Assembly (NCBI RefSeq): GCF_006345805.1
Contig: NC_043014.1
Span: 19,220,001 to 19,284,000, forward strand
DNA: 64,000 nt
Reading direction: 5' to 3'
From: Octopus sinensis
Taxonomy: Eukaryota
Shown here: positions 9,782 to 54,536 of the stretch, one piece after another
How positions within the stretch are numbered: position 1 is the stretch's first letter
Layout of the letters: each line of letters starts with the position of its first letter
Notes under the pieces: generated by a model
The model's input: only the letters and a program-made list of their open reading frames with translations
Told to the model about the DNA's origin: nothing
Database searches by the model: none
Translations under genes and position numbers: made by a program

Positions 9782-10502
9782 ATATATATACATATATATA
9801 CACGCACACACACACACATATATGTATATGTATATACATACATGCATATATATATACATATATACGTATATAGATATATAGATGTGTATGTGTATATATT
9901 AGTATATAGATCTATCTATATGTATATGTATATATGAATATATATATATATACATATATATGTATATATATTTATATATATATATATATACACAGAGTTA
10001 CAGACATGTACACACACACAAAGATGTATATATATATACATATGTATACGTGCATATATACATATACATGTGCATATATAATTACGTATATATTTATAAA
10101 TATGTACGAATATATATATATATGAACACATATATATGTATACATACATATATATATATAAACACATATATATATATATAAGATATATACATCCGCATAC
10201 GTTACATACAGGCGTGTATGTGTAACTGCGTGCGTTTTGATTATGCATGTATGTGTATAGATATGAATATTATATATCTATATCCACCTGTATGTATATG
10301 TTTGTGTAGGTTTGTATGTTCAACAATAAATCTATGTATGCATGTAGTATATAATAAATGTACAATCCGCGCGTCGTACAAAAAAAAAACGAATTTCTAT
10401 AATTTTTATATATGGCGATATAAATAAAATGTCCATCGTAAATATACAAATATCACTCACACACGCAGGTATATATGTATATGTGTATACATATACATAC
10501 AT

Positions 10503-10559
<57 letters not shown>

Positions 10560-10725
10560 CGCACACATATGTATATACATATATATATATATTCATACAC
10601 ATACAAACGTGTATTTGCGTACATATACAAATATATACATATTTGTATATATGACAGGTATATGGTATATATGTATATATAAATTATATATATACATATA
10701 TATATGTGTGTGTGTGTATTTGTAA

Positions 10726-10758
<33 letters not shown>

Positions 10759-11090
10759 AATAATTATATACATTTGCTTATTTAGATATGTATACATATG
10801 CTTATATACATATACGTACATTATATATATACATATACTTACATATATAGCGCGTAGTAGTTTGATAATCTTCTCGATTGCAATTAGCCGAAATAAGTAA
10901 TTAATAATATGATGGAGAGTGGAATAACTTCATTCATTCAAGTCTTAGAATGAATAAATACATATGTTTGCATGTGTATAAATATATACATGCATATATA
11001 TGTATGTATATATATGTATATATATGTGTGTTTTTATATATATGTATATTTATATTTATGTATATGTATATATAAATCATGTATGTGTAC

Positions 11091-11139
<49 letters not shown>

Positions 11140-11665
11140 TATAAGGTAACGAATTGAAATTGTACGATATGTGGAATTCCATGTTAGATACTTGTGTGTC
11201 TTTGTGTGTTCATATGTATGAATATAAAACATACATATATATAAGCCCATATTATGTATGTATATATGTATGTACATATATATGTAAATGCATTATAATG
11301 TGTGTGTATTTGTATATCTGTGTGCTTGAAATTATTTCTGTGGAACTATATGTATTCGTATACGTAGTTTTTATTCGTATAAAATAATCATCTGGTGTAA
11401 ATCTGTAGATATAAGTGTGTATAATAGTTTGTATAGAATGGTGTACAAAGTCAACACAGCCATAGTGTATGTGGTTTTAAAACATACATGTTTAAGGTAT
11501 TTTACAAAATATATATGCACATGTATATATGCATTTATATATCTATATATGTATATTCCAATCAGTAAAGTTATATTGGCATATAAGAATGTAGTATATA
11601 TATATATATGTGTGTGTGCATATATATGTATATGCATATGTGTGTTTGTTTCTATATATGTATGC

Positions 11666-11737
<72 letters not shown>

Positions 11738-11769
11738 TATGTATATATATATATATACATATATATGTA

Positions 11770-11806
<37 letters not shown>

Positions 11807-11810
11807 GTAC
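8850..11810. repeat. Long mosaic of (TA)n/(CA)n/(TATG)n microsatellites
   Basis: Direct inspection; source of many spurious Y/I ORFs. Confidence 0.95.
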
Positions 11811-12115
11811 TGATTGGTAAATTATTTTCAATTTTTCATTTTCTTCAATTGCCGATTTCATCTAATGTCTCTTGGGAATGTTCTGGAGGTACTGTGTACC
11901 TCGCTTCAAACAGTATCAATAATAATAATAATAATAATAATAATATAATAATAATAATAATAATAATAACAATAATAATAATAATAATAATAATAATAAC
12001 TGCTGATACTATTGTTATCAATAGTTATATTAATACTATTCATATTATGTTTATTATTAATATGAGGATAATAACGATAATGCCCGTTCATATTTCACTG
12101 GATTCCGCGTTATTC

Positions 12116-12331
12116 TCAGTCAGTCTCTTTATCAATATTAATTTTTTCTTCACTCTGGTTTATTGCAACGGTTTTGGTTTCAGAATCCGTTCCGTCAATA
12201 TTATTAAACTTAGAGATAACATCCATTTCTTCGGGTGTGTTTTTTCCTTCTTCAATTGGGTCAGGGAATTGCTTTTGGTAGAAAATGCTGTTCAGCTTCC
12301 CTTGATTTCGCTGAACAGCGGGTGGTAATTG
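12116..12331 (-). CDS. Putative readthrough/recoded C-terminal extension, 71 aa ([20 protein letters not shown]...[11 protein letters not shown])
   Basis: In frame directly after TGA, context TGA CAA TTA, open to a second TGA at 12118-12116; AATAAA at 12055-12050 downstream. Confidence 0.5.

Positions 12332-54536
<42,205 letters not shown>

Follow-up and report, generated by a model that had tools for sequence, protein, structure and literature searches.

A conserved coding extension behind a candidate leaky UGA stop in an octopus RhoGEF gene

Good evidence for functional stop-codon readthrough exists for insects and for a few mammalian genes. Of the four-base stop contexts UGA-C is the leakiest, and in the known cases near-cognate decoding of UGA inserts Trp, Arg or Cys. 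Conserved readthrough has been called in flies, mosquitoes and mammals by the signature of coding-type substitution past the stop (PMC5100048, PMC4132726). Here we describe a candidate of this kind in Octopus sinensis. The DNA analysed is a stretch of 64,000 nucleotides (contig NC_043014.1, positions 19,220,001 to 19,284,000; hereafter the window), on the minus strand of which the last exon of a RhoGEF gene reaches an in-frame UGA that is followed directly by CAAUUA and by 71 further sense codons before a second UGA. We found no earlier report of functional stop-codon readthrough in molluscs, cephalopods or RhoGEFs in the literature searched.

The locus resembles the conserved readthrough candidates of Drosophila, Anopheles and a few mammalian genes (PMC5100048, PMC4132726) in that the extension is in frame and bears a coding signature, the UGA-C is conserved, a predicted hairpin lies just downstream, and the extension is acidic and of low complexity; the logic of detection is also the same. 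It differs in that one pairwise comparison takes the place of a multi-species PhyloCSF score, and in its host, which is a non-insect invertebrate. Moreover, the mammalian cases carry UGA-CUAG, whereas CAAUUA stands here. The six bases after the stop are identical to those of the type I signal of tobacco mosaic virus (UAG-CAA-UUA), but in our case the gene is a cellular animal gene, the stop is UGA rather than UAG, and there is an extra hairpin, which the viral signal does not need. In human cells, CAAUUA after UGA gave about 15% readthrough; all six bases mattered, and UGA was as effective as UAG (PMC4132726). A stable stem-loop shortly past a UGA, as predicted here, also recalls structure-assisted readthrough in Drosophila hdc and kelch and at viral UGA codons followed by a stem-loop or pseudoknot (background in PMC4132726). 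Additionally, coleoid cephalopods are known to produce C-terminally extended isoforms from a genomic stop by stop-loss RNA editing (PMC8382921), so that in a coleoid RNA editing is a competing route to the same extended product.

The terminal exon and its conserved extension

The terminal exon was compared with three contigs of about 940 nt (L001-L003), which derive from one related species (three sequencing runs) and are genomic, the intron being included. The parts of the exon are as follows.

12335 to 12529, minus strand: coding part of the terminal exon, comprising the last PH-domain helix and a 50-residue tail ending ...SMDVVHF
12332 to 12334, minus strand: first in-frame stop, UGA followed by C, the stop proposed to be bypassed; the same in the window and in the three contigs of the relative
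12326 to 12331, minus strand: hexamer CAAUUA directly 3' of the stop, which fits CARYYA and is kept in L001-L003
12119 to 12331, minus strand: 71-codon extension ending ...IDKETD, in frame with the coding sequence and without indels relative to L001
12110 to 12118, minus strand: second stop UGA-G, then GAA and an in-frame UAA, with the look of a tandem terminator; TGAGAATAA, identical in L001-L003

The exon starts at 12529 behind a conserved phase 0 acceptor that is rated good (...ttattctgcag/GGC), and the minus-strand translation of 12529-12116 runs from GQWVTT... to ...IDKETD and its stop. A first-pass annotation, made from the letters of the window, had described a UGA, CAATTA, 71 sense codons and a second UGA, and this layout is correct: the four elements occupy 12334-12332 (the A of the first TGA being position 12332), 12331-12326, 12331-12119 and 12118-12116, and the last is followed by GAA and by TAA at 12112-12110. 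Its recognition of a stop plus CARYYA also holds (TGA CAATTA, 12334-12326), and the motif is conserved in L001-L003. Such a motif behind a stop is uncommon, and alone it is not decisive; TGA plus CARYYA was observed 13 times when both strands of the window were counted, where shuffles predict 7.2. The annotation had further put the chance of the open frame at about 1%. Base composition gives 0.3-2% for 71 open codons. Empirically, stop-to-stop intervals of at least 71 codons make up 3.2-3.5% of all those in the window, a figure that simple repeats and real exons inflate. The extension itself is acidic and of low complexity, has no Pfam match and is probably disordered.

L001-L003 retain the TGA, the CAATTA, exactly 71 codons without indels, the second TGA and the following TAA, and TGA-C is common to all four independent sequences (the window and the three contigs). 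Identity to L001 leaps from about 0.6 to 0.83-1.0 exactly at the acceptor, is unchanged across the first stop, and drops after the second stop, where indels resume. Expressed as divergence between the window and L001, the intron differs by 31% with 27 gap columns, the coding part of the exon by 9.2%, the extension by 11.7% without gaps, and the DNA downstream of the second stop by 21% with 14 gap columns; the flanks have about one indel event per 60 nt. Within the exon and extension, L001-L003 differ among themselves by three polymorphisms, each of them a synonymous third-position change.

The substitutions past the stop are of the coding type. Between the window and L001, the extension has 2, 7 and 16 substitutions at first, second and third codon positions, and 15 of its 23 changed codons are synonymous and 8 non-synonymous; the corresponding numbers for the coding part of the exon are 5, 1 and 12, with 12 synonymous and 6 non-synonymous changes. 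The resulting dN/dS is 0.12 for the extension (dS 0.51) and 0.10 for the true coding part. When the same substitutions were permuted 5000 times, 15 synonymous changes were never reached; the remaining two frames of the extension have 0-2. Constraint is complete over extension codons 1-30, where there are eight synonymous changes, dN = 0 and dS is 0.66. The orthologue test that the first-pass annotation had called for (stop, CAATTA and frame kept, with dN/dS below 1) was thus passed in one related species, and neither a sense codon in place of the stop nor a frameshifted extension, the outcomes named there as refuting, was seen in L001-L003. Judged by this pattern of substitution, purifying selection of the protein-coding type maintains the extension in the same frame as the coding sequence before it, and the extension is very probably translated and functional.

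It could be argued that the extension is untranslated, as a 3' untranslated region with an RNA-level role, as a chance frame or pattern, or as the remnant of a formerly longer protein. The open frame by itself is indeed weak evidence: one half of random substitution placements create no stop, and about 3% of the stop-to-stop intervals in the window are equally long. However, RNA-level constraint gives no three-base periodicity with 15 of 23 changes synonymous in one frame only, and a decaying remnant would have a dN/dS near 1 together with indels, where we observed 0.12 and none. We regard an untranslated extension as very improbable.

Several other accounts of the extension were rejected. Neither a recent nonsense allele nor a sequencing error can account for the UGA, because the stop is present in four independent sequences and the frame downstream of it has been selected across a dS of about 0.5. 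An independent downstream open reading frame (ORF) or second cistron is excluded, as the earliest ATG in the extension is codon 36 and the constraint is strongest before it (dN = 0). Frameshifting is excluded, since the extension lies in frame 0 and the frame is unchanged. The antisense ORF at 11417-12328 on the plus strand is excluded as the constrained frame because it is codon-aligned, so that the sense third positions, which hold most of the changes, are its first positions.

A protein record that seemed to carry a sense codon at the stop proved to be an artefact. P0001 (L001:387-797), the one protein returned when exon and extension were joined by an X and searched, is carried by three contigs and has W at both stop positions, but the DNA reads TGA. 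It had been called on AT-rich eukaryotic DNA under a genetic code that reads TGA as Trp, and so had P0003 (L004:10001-10378), L004 being a more distant genomic contig (ENA ERZ21867824, ctg119256l). The public protein collection contains entries that were called in this way on AT-rich eukaryotic contigs, in which W is really a stop, and such calls can be mistaken for evidence of readthrough or of a sense codon. P0002, which came from the search of representative proteins, is an unrelated repeat protein.

Proposed readthrough and rival routes past the first stop

Among the routes by which the first stop could be bypassed, ribosomal readthrough fits best. We assign a probability of roughly 0.58 to the reading that the UGA at 12334-12332 is a leaky stop, read through by design; that the bypass takes place at the ribosome rather than on the RNA, and how efficient it would be, we infer from the sequence context. 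Most ribosomes would terminate at the first UGA and release a RhoGEF ending ...SMDVVHF, while a fraction would decode the UGA by a near-cognate tRNA and continue in the same frame for 71 codons. These ribosomes would halt at the strong UGA-G...UAA pair, which would yield a second isoform with the conserved C-terminal extension. The leakiness would come from the UGA-C context and from the CAAUUA directly after the stop, and a predicted hairpin may add to it, as a ribosome that pauses on the UGA would meet this hairpin at its leading edge.

12287 to 12319, minus strand: hairpin with a 10-bp perfect stem and a 13-nt loop, 12 nt past the stop; arms GCUGUUCAGC (12319-12310) and GCUGAACAGC (12296-12287)

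The hairpin has a folding energy of -17.7 kcal/mol (z = -3.8), and none of 200 shuffled sequences was as stable. In L001 the stem is identical and z is -3.2.

Several points weigh against readthrough. The 12-nt spacer exceeds the roughly 8 nt that is typical of known structure-stimulated readthrough signals, and the stem is only 10 bp long. No compensatory changes or covariation that would back the stem were found among the window and L001-L003, and in L002 and L003 a U-to-C variant leaves the stem with one C.A mismatch and a weaker energy of -13.2 kcal/mol, so that the relative is polymorphic for a weaker hairpin. Conservation of the six nucleotides of CAATTA weighs little at this divergence; it is weak evidence because both codons are also constrained as Gln-Leu. 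Furthermore, the terminal exon was compared with one other species (three individuals, L001-L003) in a single pairwise comparison. This species was the only one covering the terminal exon across all our searches, which comprised homologue searches (including six frames, three exon regions and TGA read as W), HMMER against 1.84 billion representative proteins, and metagenome scans; L004 was found as an additional distant contig. Lastly, stop-loss editing, in which a stop is converted to Trp, is documented in coleoids, the example in the paper being UAG to UGG (PMC8382921).

If such editing acted here, ADAR would deaminate the A at 12332 in some transcripts, the UGA would be read as UGG (Trp), and ordinary translation would give the extended isoform. 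Editing would account equally well for the coding constraint in the extension. However, the documented UAG-to-UGG site has a favourable 5' U, whereas the A considered here follows a G and no double-stranded partner was found for it. The context of the target is G-A-C, and at squid editing sites a 5' G is depleted (8% in the quoted subset) and a 3' G enriched (PMC4384741). A small local hairpin that pairs the A at 12332 in the window has no counterpart in L001, in which P(paired) of this A is 0.15. Over the 3 kb to each side, the best duplexes reach -23.6 kcal/mol, which is no better than shuffled queries (mean -24.9), and neither locally nor within this distance did we find a conserved or above-chance predicted duplex involving that A. 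Synonymous divergence beside the stop is at the neutral level (dS 0.39-0.66) and is not lowered. Conserved cephalopod editing sites lie in regions of lowered divergence, which would not fit this locus. We consider editing of this stop unlikely. The first-pass annotation had left readthrough and editing side by side; its proposal of a coding extension is supported, and the sequence context favours readthrough and leans against editing.

A splicing explanation would dispense with recoding altogether. The upstream exon could be joined to an alternative 3' splice site, ...ccacccgctgttcag/CGA (start 12310), skipping the PH helix, the tail and the UGA, and the extension from Arg8 onwards would then be an alternative C-terminus. 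The acceptor ttcag/CGA has its AG at 12312-12311, 21 nt past the stop, with a 73% pyrimidine tract before it; it is in phase 0 like the normal acceptor, is kept in L001-L003, and would explain the coding constraint from extension codon 8. However, such a protein would be missing the C-terminal helix that belongs to the PH-domain fold, and both changes in the seven codons between the stop and the AG (CCA to CCG; GTT/GTC) are synonymous third-position changes, although these are two events only. Use of this acceptor is clearly unlikely, and more so than editing. An internal intron that removes the stop was also rejected, as no usable, conserved donor exists and the acceptors of the only in-phase partners are poor.

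The codon is a conserved UGA, as decoding as selenocysteine by means of a selenocysteine insertion sequence (SECIS) element would demand. No SECIS match was found in a lenient Rfam scan (E up to 10) of 10500-13000, and Rfam at gathering score gave neither a SECIS nor any credible match in the whole 64 kb. Moreover, a further UGA, evidently decoded as a stop, terminates the extension, and a disordered RhoGEF tail is not a redox site. By the scans and the terminal UGA of the extension, selenocysteine is excluded, with a likelihood that we regard as virtually nil.

If readthrough at this UGA is true, an animal gene makes use of the CARYYA signal, which is known chiefly in plant viruses, and the RhoGEF has a second isoform, 72 residues longer, that standard gene models miss. 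The locus is a conserved, clean candidate with a known strong motif, at which readthrough and editing are separable by experiment. The normal C-terminus (12335-12343, minus strand) reads V-H-F in the window and M-H-F in the relative. We take this hydrophobic-x-hydrophobic end to resemble the class II PDZ-binding motifs that are presumably present on several RhoGEFs, and readthrough would mask it. A bolder and more doubtful proposal is that UGA-CAAUUA and the adjacent hairpin form a two-part signal for efficient programmed readthrough in an animal nuclear gene; this would be the first conserved molluscan case, and ...V-H-F, once made internal, might switch the partners or the location of the RhoGEF.

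The RhoGEF gene upstream of the terminal exon

The label RhoGEF, already given in the first-pass annotation, is right. Joined conserved minus-strand exons match Pfam RhoGEF and, after it, PH domains. The joined set consists of the blocks conserved in L004, two further PH exons and the terminal exon. L004 aligns only in short collinear blocks of 75-82% identity, and these blocks are exons bordered by AG/GT; the L004 stretch compared stops 1.7 kb past the exon at 32.9 kb of the window, so that the terminal exon is beyond its reach.

47317 to 47490, minus strand: exon for the C-terminal part of the DH (RhoGEF) domain; Pfam RhoGEF E = 5e-11, conserved in L004, AG/GT borders
37457 to 37579, minus strand: exon for the DH-PH linker; 82% identical to L004, covered by protein P0003, with splice borders
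32851 to 32940, minus strand: exon for the start of the PH domain; 79% identical to L004, inside the PH_5 and PH_13 matches
26558 to 26650, minus strand: PH-domain exon inside the PH matches; acceptor ccag/, donor /gtatgt
22495 to 22587, minus strand: probable PH-domain exon inside the PH_5 match of the joined exons; AG/GT borders

On the joined exons, the Pfam RhoGEF match scores 43.4 bits (cut-off 27.6) and covers the C-terminal third of the DH domain; PH_5 scores 32.7 bits (cut-off 30), PH_13 is likewise above its cut-off, and both follow the RhoGEF match. Based on these matches, the predicted gene has the Dbl-family RhoGEF layout, DH then PH. The DH exons were recognised only once they had been located by conservation with L004, and Pfam scans of long minus-strand ORFs gave no DH domain and only a weak PH-like match. 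At least one further PH exon must lie within 12530-22494 on the minus strand, because the donor of the exon at 22495-22587 is in phase 1 and the acceptor of the terminal exon in phase 0; it was not found among the ORFs of at least 28 residues in that interval.

The closest solved structures by sequence are ARHGEF12, ARHGEF1 and ARHGEF11. The gene is like this group (RGS-RhoGEF, Lbc-like) in that DH is followed directly by PH. The exons located here cover only the C-terminal third of the DH domain, and the likeness is one of best structure matches, not of orthology.

The mRNA 3' end and other elements in the window

12050 to 12055, minus strand: AATAAA, a possible poly(A) signal, 61 nt past the second stop

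The first-pass annotation had placed an AATAAA about 60 nt past the second UGA. The hexamer is present, 61 nt beyond (12055-12050), but it is not conserved in the related species: L001 has AATAGTATAC at the aligned place, and no canonical poly(A) signal was seen in the rest of the L001 contig (the counterpart of the AATAAA lies at about 860-880). This lack of conservation leaves the real mRNA 3' end uncertain. The extension itself contains a second AATAAA at 12159-12164 (minus strand), where it spells the codons Ala-Ile-Asn and is conserved in L001-L003. If used, it would place cleavage upstream of the second stop; its presence may reflect nothing more than the coding sequence.

(AT)n and (ATT)n microsatellites occupy 11640-11830 and 11915-12000, beginning about 120 nt past the second stop. 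The contigs L001-L003 end in similar TA and ATT repeats, and it is probably because of these repeats that the contigs of the relative are only about 940 nt long. Many sub-threshold matches to Rfam miRNA families fall in the microsatellite region and reflect low complexity only.

Elsewhere in the window, a RhoGEF intron contains, on the plus strand and so opposite to the gene, a broken reverse-transcriptase ORF at 39449-40109 that matches Pfam RVT_1 in two frames and is probably a decayed non-LTR retroelement. In another intron, a plus-strand ORF at 51983-52246 matches the HTH domain of the Mos1 transposase at borderline level (23.8 bits against a cut-off of 24.1), which suggests the remnant of a mariner-type transposon. 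At about 29500-31500, the same short ORFs recur several times on both strands, which points to clustered copies, both direct and inverted, of a repeat that is a few hundred bases long.
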